From positions 1 through 8,778 of the forward strand of contig BAAFSQ010000366.1 of assembly GCA_054661495.1 (NCBI GenBank): DNA of 8,778 nt, in the 5' to 3' direction. The position numbers and the translations under genes are program-made. This document shows, piece after piece, positions 1,924 through 8,252 of this stretch. Origin of the DNA: Zygophlyctis sp. KS116 (taxonomy: Eukaryota > Fungi > Chytridiomycota). The notes under the pieces are model-generated. The model was given only the letters and a program-made list of their open reading frames with translations, ran no database searches and had not been told where the DNA came from. Position 1 is the first letter of the stretch, and the number at the start of each line of letters is the position of its first letter.

Positions 1924-2751
1924 TTAACGATTAGCAATTAATTCTTCTAATCGAAGCTTATCTTTTTCAGTGAATAATTTATCTAATTTTAGTCGTGGAG
2001 GAGGAACTAGAAATTCCTTGAGTCTGATTGCCTCTAGGGCAGATGATTGTCCCTCAACCAGACATTTGAGTTCAGAGTTCTATTCATGTTTAAAACTAAA
2101 TGAATTTACCCTGTATGAGAATATTTGATGTAATTTAGATTTCATCCTTTCACTTGCTTTCTGAGCATTTTTCTCACCAATTTTCCTTGCATCTTCATCC
2201 TCGTAACCACAATGAATAATATTCCATTTCTTTTTAGATTCCTTGACTTTATCTCTATATTTTTGCCGTTCTTCATTAAGAAAACTTTTAGCTCGACATT
2301 CACTCTTCATGACTCTATTTAAAATATCAGCATTCGGAACTGAATACGCTTCATATTTAGCAAGAGTTAACGGATGAAGCCGCTTAACTTGTCTCGGATT
2401 TAATTTACTTGGATTAAAGCTGCTATTTGGTTGTAGTTTGAATGGGGAATATTCTAATTCAGTTTGTTCTGATACGTTTTGTCCGGATTTTTCAACCTTG
2501 TCTTCTATTATTTTAGATTTTGGTTGATCTATAGATGTTTTAGACGATGAAGTTCTGATTATTATTTTCTTATTCTTGATTGACTTGCCTTCCATCTGAG
2601 TAGTCTCTGATCGAGGTGCTAAAAATCTAGAATTGGATCCATTCTTTTGAAATCGTTGTGATAGAATCATTGGCATATCTTTTGTAGGAGTTAATAAAAC
2701 ATTAGATTTTGTTACTTGAGGCATATTACAGAGAAGCTCTTGTATTGACAT
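1924..2751 (-). CDS. LKAAEAR1: LKAAEAR-motif family protein (LKAAEAR1-like), about 265 aa
   Basis: Exons 2751-2110 and 2079-1924; 30-nt intron 2109-2080 (GTAAAT...AATAG). The spliced C-terminus KIGEKNAQKASERMKSKLHQIFSYR|NSELKCLVEGQSSALEAIRLKEFLVPPPRLKLDKLFTEKDKLRLEELIANR* follows the recalled family pattern (G.LKAAEAR.R......R..E...L...Q.SA..AIRLE.FLPP......D.L...ER.R.E.I). The start could be a downstream Met (2724, 2676, 2670). Confidence 0.75.
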
Positions 2752-2767
2752 AATTTTACCGTAATGA

Positions 2768-5700
2768 ATGACATCAGCAGTGCATGTAATGTCATCTGCT
2801 ATTGTTAAATTACCATTTAGTATATTAGCTGTATCCGGCTATGAAGAAAACTATCCTGCAGAATCATTAACCGACCATTCAAATCATTCGCAAGGATGGC
2901 AAACCGAGAGATTTTGTATATTTCCCCAGAGCATTATTCTGGCATTCAATTTTGGTAAATGTAGAATAAGAAAGATTCAATTGCTGATCCATGAATACAA
3001 AATACCCAAAAGAATTCAAATATTTGCAGGGAATATAGATCAGACTAAACCAATGCTAAAAGAACAGCCCGATATTGAATTTAAGAGCCTTGGGTTTATT
3101 GATCTTTGCGATAATACCAATCATTCTTACCGCTCAAGAGAATTGAAATCGATACATGTAGACATTGAAGCTACTCATTTGAAAATGGTTCTCAACAAGA
3201 ATTACATTAATGTCTTGAATCTATATAATCAAGTATAAAAGTATTTACAATTAAAAATTTAGGTTGGGATTGTAGCTATTAATTTATTAGGAGAAGTTAT
3301 GGACACAAATTATATGATCAAGACAATGTCCGAAACCAATGGATTGTATTATGGCGTAATTTCATATTTTTAATTCTAGCTGGTGAATAAACTAGACAAG
3401 GATAGTCTTGTTAATGGATTTATCAATCATGATTTGATAGATACTAGAATTCCCTTCTTGCACGATTTATCGTTTGATTATCATCAAGATGTTAAAATGA
3501 TTAGATTTATAGCTGCAGTCTCAGATGCAAAGTTAGAAGCCGTTAGAATAGAGAATTTTGGAGTAGCTAAAGCTTTAAAAACTGTGCTAAATAACTCAAA
3601 GATTGTAATTTAAAAAATTAAAGAAAAGGCTAGCTCTAGAATAATTAAAATTCAAATGGAAAAGGAAAAGTATATTTTGAATGAAGATTATGATCAAGCA
3701 CAAATATGTAAGACTGAAATTGAAGAAATCAAATCATCTTTAATTAAAAAATTACAAAGTTTTGGACTTGATATCGATCATAATGGGATTATATATTCTA
3801 TAGATAAAATTGATTCGGTCTTGGTAGAATCAAAATCAGTGAAGAGTTCTAAAGCAGATTCTCTAAATTCTGATTTAACATGTACAACTTCATCTATGTC
3901 AAGTATTGCCAGGCCTTTATCAGATTCATTACAAGAGAAATTAATTGAAACACCCATGGTAGTACCAGACGCCAAAGTTAATACTGAAAAACTATCTAGT
4001 ACATTAAGTTCAACGCAAATTTCAGATGCTTTAATTCCTCAAGAAACATTAAAGATTGCTGGAACTAATGACACGAATGCCAATCTAGAAATTCCAAATC
4101 AGCCTCAGAAAATTCCAATACTTACAAGAACAGGATCACCAATGCTACCAGCTCAACAGAAATTACTTGAGGCAGGTCTAAATGCTACAGAAATATTAGA
4201 AAAGCCCCAATCTCCTATTGAAACCAAATCAAAACCTGTGTCTGTACCTGTAACTGTACCTGTAATAACCAGAACTGGTTCTCCCATTCTACCTGCACAG
4301 CAAAAATTACTCAATCAGCCACAAGAGACATCCCAAAAAGAAGACAAAAAACTATATGATACCGGTAAAGCAGAAACTAAAAATATTCCAAAAGATTTGA
4401 CAGAGCCTGATGCATTATCTACTATTCACATGGAACAATTTTCGACTTGTATTGACATCTTTCAATTATTTGTTGTTCAACATACATTAAGTATCAATTT
4501 TAAAAATAGAGAATTTGGATTGGCTGAAATCTCCAATAAGCTAGTTGAATGGAATAAGAATCGAAATAGTTCAGATATTGATTTATTATCAATTTCTAAA
4601 GCAACAATCCAGCTAGCTGCACACTGCCTGGAAGATTCAAGAGAAAAAAGTAGTTTACAAACATTAAATGTTTTGGATCAACTCTTTGGTAAATCATTTA
4701 AAAATAACGATTAGAAATTTTATCTCAAGAAGGCGGGAAAGATTCCCTTATTCTTAATAATGTGGTTAATCTCTTACCTCTATTGATATCAAAAGCTGGA
4801 GAAACCAATCCAAGAATCAAATCTGTAACCTTTATATTTTCTAAATTTTAGAAATCCTCTGATATTTTGAAAAAAATGATGAGAATATACCACAAGCCCC
4901 CAAATTCTATTTTACCAGAACTATTAAAACCGTTTGATCAGAAAAAGGGAGGAATTATCAATCCAAAAATCTTAAAATCACGTTTAGAAATTCTAAATTT
5001 TGCAATTAGTGAATATGGAATTTCTGATAAAGATCCCAAATTTAGCAGCACAGTAAGATTCTTAAAACTTATTCAAGTCGATTATCTCTTTTATAAAACC
5101 GTTTATCGACAATACCAATACTGATGTTCGAGACTTGGCTTACACAATTATGGCCCAAATATGTATTACTCTTGGAGACTCATTTCCAAAAGAATCTACA
5201 AGCTTTATGCGAGATGCACAAAAGGAAATACTCTCAAAGAAGATCAACTCTCTTGGAGGTCTAAAACCCGCACCAGCATCTAGTTCTAAATCTTCCAAGT
5301 CTTCCAAATCTAAAAGTAACATTTTATTTCTTGTAATATATTAGCAAAATCTAAAGATTCTAAAGAATCTCGTAAAGAATCTAAATCCGATAAAAATCTA
5401 GATACCATAGACCACAAAGACTTAAAAACCCAAGATTTACCGCCAAAAGTAAAAAGTAAGAAAACAACATTTTCAGATAAATCAATTCCTGATTCAAAGA
5501 CTGATAAAGACTCTAAAGAAACCTGTTTATTTTGTGAAAAATCTATTCCAAAAACTCTAGACGGCTTAGAAGAACATTATGCAAAAGATTGCCCATATTT
5601 AGTTCATTGCCCTCAATGCAATCTAATAGTTGAAATCATTCAATTACAAACTCATATGTATGGTAGCTGTGAATTCGCACCATCAGATCCTAAATCAGTA

Positions 5701-5938: not shown

Positions 5939-6127
5939 TTATTTAGAATTATTAATAGATGTAAAGCAATCCTTGAATTCCTTCATTTCCTGTTTGCATT
6001 CCCTCCAATCCTTTTTTTCCAAATAGCAGTCTTGTAATTTGATATGATGGGCAAAACAACCAGATCGTTTAATGCGAGCGATATAAGGATCATCATTGTC
6101 CTGATCCATTTCCTGATTTCCCTTCAT
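5939..6127 (-). CDS. COA4: Cytochrome c oxidase assembly factor 4 (twin CX9C/CHCH protein)
   Basis: DDPYIARIKRSGCFAHHIKLQDCYLEKKDWRECKQEMKEFKDC: twin CX9C with the COA4-type DP...I..SGC and DWR.C...M..F..C signatures. The start is 6127 or 6109 (GAAATGG, better context). Confidence 0.88.
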   Translation of the reverse strand: MKGNQEMDQDNDDPYIARIKRSGCFAHHIKLQDCYLEKKDWRECKQEMKEFKDCFTSINNSK

Positions 6128-6329
6128 AAATGTCTAATTCTTCTTGATATATATCCCAAACACAATACGCACAACCGCTCATACAACAATTAGTGGGAGG
6201 AACAGGCTCTGGATTAACTACTAGAATAGTATTTGGCTCTGGAAACTTTTTAATAGTTTTGATCGGTATTTCCAGTAATAGATTATAGAACCGATACCGA
6301 TCTCTAGAAAGTGCTGCGGATAGAATGTT
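6093..6329 (-). CDS. OXLD1: Oxidoreductase-like domain protein (OXLD1/Oxidored-like family); start unresolved
   Basis: Stop-to-stop frame absent from the ORF track: NILSAALSRDRYRFYNLLLEIPIKTIKKFPEPNTILVVNPEPVPPTNCCMSGCAYCVWDIYQEELDIYEGKSGNGSGQ* (TGA 6095-6093). The P..PTNCCMSGC..CVWD.Y.EEL motif is characteristic of this family. Confidence 0.85.
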   Translation of the reverse strand, partial: NILSAALSRDRYRFYNLLLEIPIKTIKKFPEPNTILVVNPEPVPPTNCCMSGCAYCVWDIYQEELDIYEGKSGNGSGQ

Positions 6330-6502
6330 TTAACTGTGCCTTGCCCACTGGTTGTGAATCTTTACGCTCTACTAACAAGTCTAATATTTGAATTATGCAA
6401 AATGGTTTATGTAGTTGTTGCAATCGGTAATCAATTGGAGCTGGTTGGCTAACTTGATGTTTGCCGTTTGGCGTTGATCCTATTATTAGAATTAAGGACA
6501 TT

Positions 6503-6535
6503 GTATGTTTCTATTTATAGTCTAACGATTTTTAG
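6503..6535 (+). other. Probable 33-nt 5'-UTR intron of the 6539 gene
   Basis: Canonical GTATGT donor, CTAAC branch point (6522-6526) and TTTTTAG acceptor ending 3 nt before ATG 6539. The upstream in-frame sequence hits TGA (6455-6457) with no ATG. Confidence 0.55.
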
Positions 6536-6538
6536 GAA

Positions 6539-7326
6539 ATGTCAGTAAGCTGTATTTCTCTTTCTGCTTCTCAAGCTTGCCCAATGTACTCTGGTATTTC
6601 CATAAGCTATCAATCAGTCACAGAATTTGATCAATTCATACAAAACAAGATGTCACTAGAATTAAACATAAATTGTCCATCATTTAAGAATGAAGGTCTT
6701 AGATATCAGATATCTACAGCTTGTGGGATGTATGTAGATATTTTAAAAAGTAATTGTAATCCTGCTGATGATATACTACCAATATGTAATAATATTGTCG
6801 GAGTAACAATTGCATCTATACAGAATATGGCTAACGGTGAATGTAATAAGAATAATAATCCTATTTTGGGTGTTATTCAAAATTATGCAAGAAATAATCC
6901 TGGGAATACTAGTTGTGTTGATGCTTCAACAGTTGAAAAGAATTCATGTGGTAAATTTATATAAATTTATACAAAGGATTTAGAACAAGGGAGGAACAAA
7001 AGCAATATTGCTTTAGAAATAAATTTGTGGATACTTGTTGCTCGTCATTTAAGCCTGTTTCATCTATTTTAAATCAATCAGTAAAGGCTGATGATTCTAC
7101 AATTAGTTTAACAGAAGAAGATTATCTTAAAGAATCTGCAAATCGTTATTTAGGAACAGCACTATTTATATATGCAACTATAGGAACAACTATCTCTTGT
7201 ATAATAATGACATCAGTCTCTATATTCTATGTAATGAAGAGGCAAATACACTTAGATAAAATGCCTCATCAAAACGCAGCAAATATTGCAGACAAGATTT
7301 CTACACGAAACTCTTTATACTTTTAA
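6539..7326 (+). CDS. Cys-rich ectodomain single-pass membrane protein, about 253 aa
   Basis: Exons 6539-6950 and 6977-7326; 26-nt intron 6951-6976 gives ...EKNSCG|FRTREEQKQYCFRNKFVDTCC. There are 12 Cys in the N-terminal domain, a TM helix LGTALFIYATIGTTISCIIMTSVSIFYVM followed by KR, and a tail of about 30 aa. CISL..S..CP / LRY..S..C / E.N.CGF..YC..D.CC resembles a fungal membrane-protein ectodomain (from recall). Confidence 0.8.
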
Positions 7327-7353: not shown

Positions 7354-8252
7354 TTATTGTTTGAAATGGAGCGTTCTACATTTTCCAGCAAGATCTTTCC
7401 AAATTTCACCATTTAATCCTTTTTTTCCAGCCATATTACAAACAGAATGTGCTTGAGAATCTCCACCAACTTCTAAAAAAACTGATGATTTTGAATTTTT
7501 CTTCACTAAAATCGGTATCAAATCTATAATTCTTTTGTAAAACAAGAGTCCGTCATCTTTTGCGAATAGCGCAGAATGATCTTCCCAATCCAGTACATCT
7601 TGGCCCAAGTCACTGAATTCATTAAAAGAGATATAAGGAGGATTAGAGACAATTACATCAAAATTCCCTGAAATCGGAAGATCCTTGAATATATCTGCAT
7701 GAATAAATGATAATCTAGTTTTTGGAATTTCCAATTTCCTTTGATTAACTAGAGCCAGCCTATAAGCAGATAATGAATTATCTATCCCTATCACTTGAGC
7801 ATTGACTCCCAAATTTGATAAATTAGAAGCTATCGCCAATGATATACATCCAGATCCTGAACATAAATCTAAAATTCTTAGTTCCTTTTGGGAATTTGTC
7901 TCAACAGAACCTTTTAAAAGATCAATTACTTTCAATGTCCTACTTTTAGCTGTAAAATATACCATTCTTCTGTTTCCCAGCGAGGAATTAAAGTTGGAGG
8001 CCTCGTTCTAATCTCCAATCCACAAAAAGGCTGAGATCTAAGAATATACTGTAGTGGTTTATGATAAACTATCCGATCTCTAATCCAAGCATTGAGCCGA
8101 TTCCTTTCTCTTAAAGTAAATGTATGTAGCAATGACTCTAGATGATGCAAGTTTCCTCCTTTCCTATAACCACTCCTTTTCTCCAATATAGCTTGAATCA
8201 TCCATTTTAACTCTTGCCGAGGCAAATCCTTCCATCGTTCATAAATCCACAT
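7354..8252 (-). CDS. MTQ1: HemK/PrmC-family release-factor glutamine N5-methyltransferase (mitochondrial MTQ1/HEMK1 type), about 291 aa
   Basis: Exons 8252-7963 and 7939-7354; the 23-nt intron 7962-7940 joins the two overlapping ORFs. Motifs KPLQYIL..QPF, TLIPRWETEEW, ILDLCSGSGCI (SAM binding) and VSNPPYI. First in-frame ATG after the upstream TAG (8291-8289) is 8252; the track start 8276 is TTG. Confidence 0.92.

Follow-up and report, generated by a model that had tools for sequence, protein, structure and literature searches.

Overlapping OXLD1-like and COA4-like genes in a compact fungal genome: an inherited arrangement that may be expressed from one mRNA

Organization of the Locus

The window, by which we mean the whole 8,778-nt stretch of DNA analyzed here from the freshwater, chytrid-like fungus Zygophlyctis sp. 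KS116, carries two small open reading frames (ORFs) on its minus strand, the first of which ends inside the second. The features of the pair are as follows.

6093 to 6329, minus strand: OXLD1/Dpc25-like open frame, 78 codons and a TGA
6117 to 6221, minus strand: Oxidored-like domain (PF09791) with the CCMSGCAYCVWDIYQEEL motif
6180 to 6182, minus strand: Met codon of CCMSGC, the sole ATG within the OXLD1 coding part, with a pyrimidine at -3
5939 to 6109, minus strand: COA4-like twin-CX9C ORF from the conserved ATG at 6109, 56 amino acids and a TAA
6125 to 6127, minus strand: upstream ATG (6127) in the COA4 frame, weak in context and confined to the window and L002
6093 to 6109, minus strand: conserved dual-coding overlap of 17 nt (17-20 nt in relatives, with the same frame offset)

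No stop interrupts the OXLD1-like frame between 6329 and its TGA at 6095-6093, with conserved coding sequence from 6302 at the latest (DRYRFYNLLL...). The COA4-like ORF ends in a TAA at 5941-5939 and has two in-frame ATGs. A first-pass annotation of this DNA had the OXLD1 frame stopping inside the COA4 frame, and every position that it gave holds: the overlap is 35 nt when counted from ATG 6127 and 17 nt when counted from ATG 6109. Its description of a weak COA4 ATG (6127, tttATGa) followed by a strong one (6109, gaaATGg) is likewise correct, and the Met of CCMSGC (6182, tgtATGa), which it had named as the only ATG between 6330 and 6128, is the single ATG on the minus strand across the whole of 6500-6128. 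The OXLD1 stop is an out-of-frame reading of two COA4 Asp codons (GAT GAT). The same annotation had noted that no GT-AG intron lies near the junction. There is no GT dinucleotide on the minus strand from 6158 to about 6052 and, therefore, a GT-AG intron cannot fuse the OXLD1 and COA4 frames. GC donors are also absent from this interval, and a fusing intron was ruled out.

Identity of the Two Proteins

The pair consists of two genuine nuclear genes, each present once and each encoding a small mitochondrial protein, arranged head to tail on the minus strand. The OXLD1-like frame matched the Pfam Oxidored-like family (PF09791) at 57.2 bits, and at 57.8 bits in a scan of the genome, where the gathering score is 24. 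The family's Cys motif, CCxSGCxxCVW, is present as CCMSGCAYCVW (6188-6156) and is invariant across relatives. PF09791 occurs nowhere else in the 12.7-Mb assembly. Among its best 120 relatives, the best named were from chytrids (e.g., Spizellomyces, Cladochytrium, and Rhizophlyctis), and none of the 120 has an OXLD1-CHCH fusion or any second domain. OXLD1 is known in human as C17orf90 and in yeast as Dpc25, and COA4 is also named Cmc3.

The COA4-like protein has C-x9-C twice, and all four Cys are invariant in the alignment of relatives. It scored 18.1 bits against Pfam CHCH, under the cut-off of 27.2. Its identification as COA4 is based on the JGI label COA4 carried by a 68%-identical relative (P0007), on ESM-Atlas clusters named COA4/CHCH (0.93 for this ORF), and on a DPYIARIKRSGC head that is conserved across relatives. 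A search of PDB sequences with the COA4 profile returned noise only and no relative. The ORF is present as a single copy in the 12.7-Mb assembly.

Conservation of the Overlap among Relatives

Relatives of the locus were compiled as syntenic metagenome loci through protein word searches and contig look-ups. The set comprised L002 and L003 (about 97% identical to the window), L005, L006, L010, and the group L007/L008/L009 (65-74% COA4 identity in the alignment), and the GC-richer L015. When metagenomes were scanned with a COA4 profile, the sole new locus was nearly a duplicate of L007.

In the window, L002, L005, L006, L010, and L007, the OXLD1 stop lies 17-20 nt into the COA4 ORF and the two ORFs keep the same relative frame in all. 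The conserved adjacency that the first-pass annotation had proposed to look for in relatives is thus accompanied by conservation of the overlap itself. The COA4 start of every relative aligns with ATG 6109 of the window and, therefore, ATG 6127 is lineage-specific. Across lineages, dN/dS (Nei-Gojobori) was 0.10-0.35 for OXLD1 and 0.12-0.16 for COA4, with dS saturated between lineages. By this measure both frames are under purifying selection. Saturated dS combined with low dN/dS argues that both frames are translated genes and that the overlap is old. At least five diverged lineages of the AT-rich clade retain the overlap, and the arrangement is inherited.

Metatranscriptome contigs show variation within the pair. 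Contig X1, from a related strain, has a 12-nt in-frame tandem duplication in the overlap, at 6098..6099. The duplicated sequence (AATGGATCAGGA, minus strand) is in frame for both ORFs, and with it a second COA4-frame ATG was gained. Contig X3 is more distant, with five differences in the COA4 coding part; when X1 and X3 were pooled, 5 of the 6 differences in COA4 coding sequence were at third codon positions. A 1-nt assembly error at the junction, which would have split one fused ORF into two, was a concern of the first-pass annotation. The frames are identical in a second assembly (L002/L003), in X1 with its 12-nt in-frame insertion, and in four diverged lineages, which excludes such an error and leaves the assembly-indel reading with practically no chance of being correct.

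The GC-richer relative differs. In L015 (3001-3602), the OXLD1 ORF encodes 130 aa, starts at a normal ATG, and has a head that is Arg-rich and presequence-like; its TGA overlaps the ATG of a 70-codon COA4 ORF (ATGA), the conserved COA4 Met following 26 nt on. The frame offset between the two genes is unlike that of the AT-rich lineages. Since the genes of L015 abut in the same syntenic block, their adjacency predates the AT-rich clade. Nine further ATGs lie between the OXLD1 start and COA4 in L015, where ATG is not depleted; given this adjacency and these nine ATGs, COA4 would have to be expressed in some other way in L015.

The frame relationship bears on whether the pair might be joined during translation. 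A +1 frameshift of the antizyme type where OXLD1 stops (xxx UGA U) would yield an OXLD1-COA4 fusion protein, and the COA4 frame is indeed +1 of OXLD1 in five of five AT-rich lineages, with UGA-U in four of the five and the OXLD1 stop placed just before the conserved DDPYIARIK. However, the UGA is an automatic by-product of reading GAT GAT in the other frame, and in every lineage, L015 included, COA4 retains its own well-placed AUG at the same position, with a purine at -3. The offset in L015 differs, and no PF09791-CHCH fusion was identified among the best 120 relatives. Frameshifting is therefore very improbable in our estimation.

Outside the syntenic block the two genes are unlinked: for Spizellomyces punctatus, Cladochytrium replicatum, and Gorgonomyces haynaldii, tblastn identified no COA4 closer than 3 kb to OXLD1. 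In a further locus, L004, OXLD1 has an ATG and no COA4 lies downstream on the 686-nt contig. Three copies of the 16-mer TGATATCGCAGATCTT (in the order +, -, +) are located directly after the OXLD1 domain at L004:430-600, an arrangement that is either a small inverted-repeat insertion or the product of a chimeric 686-nt contig.

The first-pass annotation had used the pairing to tie OXLD1 to complex IV or copper biology. We find this functional link unsupported because synteny in this compact genome extends over the entire block, because the genes are unlinked in Spizellomyces, Cladochytrium, and Gorgonomyces, because no OXLD1-CHCH fusion occurs among the best 120 relatives, and because human OXLD1 undergoes membrane-potential-dependent import with a cleaved presequence (PMC8664129), a route unlike that of an intermembrane-space CX9C protein. 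The OXLD1-COA4 overlap says nothing, as yet, on the function of OXLD1.

The Start of OXLD1 and Its Leader

In the AT-rich clade, OXLD1 has neither a conserved AUG nor a long N-terminal extension, whereas L015 has both. Three features upstream of the conserved coding part bear on where translation might begin.

6499 to 6501, minus strand: ATG opening a 65-codon ORF in another frame; ATC in L002, which also has two in-frame stops
6304 to 6334, minus strand: GT...AG segment just before AGATCGG, with lengths of 31, 30, 23, 23, 23, 23, and 19 nt in seven lineages
6324 to 6326, minus strand: in-frame ATT with A at -3, a candidate non-AUG OXLD1 start, kept in frame in six of seven lineages

No consistent ATG path leads into the OXLD1 frame, even when up to two introns of 17-47 nt are permitted. 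With two tiny introns allowed, L002 and L005 lack any ATG path into this frame, which ruled out an ATG-started OXLD1 model of this kind. The frame that opens at ATG 6501 needs a 31-nt intron (6334-6304) to join that of OXLD1, and its ORF is probably fortuitous. The GT...AG segment differs by a 1-nt indel between the window and a 97%-identical relative, and its variation in length (19-31 nt) indicates that it is non-coding. From its sequence, the segment would be either a tiny intron or a part of the 5' leader, non-coding both ways.

The ATT at 6326 lies 24 or 18 nt ahead of the GAT of RDRY, and indels upstream of it are not multiples of three. We infer from this pattern that it is a candidate non-AUG start for OXLD1. 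A conserved hairpin (ATCGG...CCGAT) in the RDRYRFY region was also considered and was unsupported (consensus of -2.2 kcal/mol, z-score of -1.25).

A frame that lacks a conserved AUG may be a frame in decay, in which case the upstream ORF would no longer be a separately translated gene and would now serve as a leader of COA4. The 1-nt indel and two stops just upstream in L002 are consistent with decay, as are the lack of an RNA contig over the frame (see below) and the changes in OXLD1 that distinguish L002 from the window, of which there are three, all non-synonymous. Yet the domain is intact (57 bits) in the sole PF09791 copy of the genome, and across lineages dN/dS is 0.10-0.35 with dS saturated. 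Moreover, no segment differs less between L002 and the window than the OXLD1 coding part (1.5%), whereas the leader differs by 5.9% and has indels. We consider a decaying OXLD1 improbable.

Depletion of ATG Upstream of COA4

Observed and expected ATG counts were compared over a region that opens 30 nt ahead of the conserved RDRY codons and closes at the COA4 AUG. In the AT-rich clade, the observed/expected ratio was 0.26-0.46 upstream of the COA4 AUG, compared to 1.2-2.3 inside COA4 and 1.3 in OXLD1 of L015. The depletion of AUG that the first-pass annotation had envisaged in relatives was thus recovered in the AT-rich clade, with L015 showing none. When codons were resampled with the protein held fixed, 0.8 extra ATGs were expected per lineage, and four lineages have zero non-Met ATGs. 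The resampling P was about 0.36 per lineage with a product of about 0.01-0.02, the lineages entering this product sharing ancestry. At fixed protein sequence, the depletion is only modestly significant, and suggestive rather than strong. The ATG-free gap ranks between first and seventh of all such gaps in each locus. A purine occupies -3 at every COA4 AUG and a pyrimidine at the AUG of CCM.

Genome Compaction and RNA Evidence

Gene spacing around the pair is extreme. ATG 6501 and the ATG of the divergent gene at 6539 are 37 nt apart. At the other end, the COA4 stop and the convergent CEP104 stop are 1 nt apart in L005 (L005:810-812) and, therefore, the 3' UTRs of COA4 and CEP104 must fall inside each other's coding sequence there.

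Three tiny introns were identified in neighboring genes.

3233 to 3262, plus strand: CEP104 intron of 30 nt, GT...AG
3356 to 3379, plus strand: CEP104 intron of 24 nt, GT...AG
7940 to 7962, minus strand: intron of 23 nt in a HemK-like methyltransferase gene, GT...AG

All three begin with GTA(T/A) and finish with TAG. The genetic code is standard, and the apparent in-frame stops of CEP104 fall inside GT...AG introns. CAA>TAA changes in L002, together with a TGA-only frame of 673 codons across CEP104, had hinted at a ciliate-type code, with TAA and TAG as sense codons; it was ruled out by the location of the in-frame stops inside the 24-nt and 30-nt introns.

Several other ORFs flank these genes. 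A Cys-rich ORF of 141 aa (6539-6964, plus strand) is followed by an ORF with a transmembrane stretch (7027-7326, plus strand), both without a Pfam match, and the two probably encode a single protein, either secreted or membrane-located. The ATG of the 141-aa ORF (6539) is where metatranscriptome contigs set in, at 6540 and 6545, and variants in the two ORFs are mostly at first and second codon positions. A 223-aa ORF (2080-2751, minus strand) adjoins CEP104 and has a weak match to the LKAAEAR family (20 bits, under the cut-off); it may be another cilium-associated gene.

Two contigs assembled from the metatranscriptomes of two studies lie over COA4 only, with ends at 6122 and 6078. Among the short Logan contigs, none that is RNA-derived covers 6123-6539 or bridges 6123-6130 into OXLD1; depth is 2-4, at which a coverage gap proves nothing and contig ends are not transcript ends. 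These contigs are relevant to the possibility that COA4 has its own promoter and transcription start inside the OXLD1 coding sequence, such that the two would be separately expressed overlapping genes and the OXLD1 RNA would be minor for COA4. Coverage of COA4 by contigs of two studies with none over OXLD1 would fit that case, as would a TATATAT run at 6153-6147, which precedes the contig end at 6122 by 25-31 nt. The L015 pair, adjacent yet not depleted of ATG, and the extreme spacing of genes (37 nt divergent, 1 nt convergent) also favor an internal promoter. However, the TATA-like run is coding (WDIYQ) and is absent from L006 and L010, and contigs at a depth of 2-4 cannot reveal where transcripts end. 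An internal promoter also leaves unexplained the loss of the OXLD1 AUG and the ORF-wide lack of ATG in five lineages. We assign an internal COA4 promoter a probability somewhat short of even.

One mRNA or Two

The alternative is a shared OXLD1-COA4 mRNA from which ribosomes reach the COA4 AUG at 6109 by leaky scanning, a model that, on the sequence features described above, we place only slightly below an even chance. The two are close rivals, with an internal promoter about as likely as leaky scanning. Under leaky scanning, an mRNA for OXLD1 would have to pass its own stop into COA4, with about 170 nt left before the convergent gene, and we infer that such an mRNA would therefore carry both ORFs. 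In the AT-rich clade, the AUG of OXLD1 would have been lost and translation would probably start at a weak near-cognate codon, perhaps the AUU at 6326. Over roughly the 200 nt before the COA4 AUG, scanning ribosomes would meet no AUG save that of the motif Met, in a poor context. Since OXLD1 would be AUG-poor and weakly started, most scanning ribosomes would reach the COA4 AUG at 6109. A shorter, COA4-only transcript may coexist. The pairing itself is read as a product of genome compaction, with no shared pathway indicated.

That one mRNA makes both proteins was the central proposal of the first-pass annotation, and it stands in part. The conserved overlap, the depletion of ATG, the AUG-less ORF1, and the purine at -3 are all in keeping with it, whereas the RNA contigs that cover COA4 only and the adjacency without ATG depletion in L015 are not. 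A fuller version of the leaky-scanning model is a natural dicistronic mRNA in which a compacted OXLD1 gave up its AUG and presequence, took the AUU at 6326 as its start, and had its internal AUGs purged, so that little OXLD1 and most COA4 would be made from the same capped mRNA, with L015 retaining the ancestral AUG state. Taken as a whole, this scenario is possible but doubtful.

If one mRNA does encode both proteins, the loci would form an evolutionary series, from abutting genes with a normal AUG in L015 to an overlapping, AUG-less, and ATG-purged ORF1 in the AT-rich clade. Such a series would show compaction turning two genes into one translation unit. It would also bear on how compact fungal genomes are annotated, in which ORFs lacking an AUG and very small overlapping genes are overlooked.

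Comparison with Known Systems

The two proteins resemble known families. As in OXLD1/Dpc25, the window protein has an Oxidored-like domain above the Pfam cut-off and the CCxSGCxxCVW motif, and as in COA4/Cmc3, its neighbor has the twin Cx9C pattern and a D-P-x-x-A-R-I-x-x-S-G-C head. In contrast, the OXLD1 protein of the window is short and lacks the long presequence of L015 and of chytrid homologs (123-216 aa), and the OXLD1 and COA4 genes are not neighbors elsewhere.

Gordon and colleagues reportedly described polycistronic transcripts in 2015 from single-molecule cDNA of fungi other than chytrids. The likeness to the present model is that of fungal nuclear genes on one mature mRNA. To our knowledge, overlap of ORFs and an AUG-less ORF1 are not described features of those fungal polycistrons.

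Overlapping, multigene transcripts also occur in the compacted genomes of microsporidia and nucleomorphs. The locus is similar to these in that there is almost no intergenic DNA and the transcripts of neighbors enter each other's coding sequence. We know of no case in which the downstream ORF of a microsporidian or nucleomorph multigene RNA is translated. The present locus differs in that the stretch ahead of ORF2 seems fitted to scanning. PMC3629993 carries a citation with the words 'overlapping gene expression in compacted eukaryotic genomes'.

Close parallels are with the bicistronic loci of green algae, for which Duenas et al. demonstrated leaky scanning experimentally and described a weak ORF1 start and depletion of ATG before ORF2 (PMC11291117). 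The distance between the algal ORFs is very short or the ORFs overlap, and many encode COX-assembly factors (PMC11291117). The median observed/expected ratio of ATG in the loci of Chlamydomonas and Auxenochlorella is 0.43-0.49, compared to 0.26-0.46 here (PMC11291117). A small ORF1, a weak start, normal ATGs inside ORF2, and cross-species conservation are further points in common, as are the products of many algal loci, namely small mitochondrial proteins, with cytochrome c oxidase assembly factors among them (PMC11291117). The present locus differs in that it belongs to a chytrid-like fungus and is known from sequence, in that ORF1 has no AUG in the AT-rich clade, and in that the ORFs overlap by 17-20 nt rather than abutting. 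Should one mRNA carry and express both ORFs, the OXLD1-COA4 pair would represent, in a fungus, the equivalent of the leaky-scanning bicistrons of green algae.
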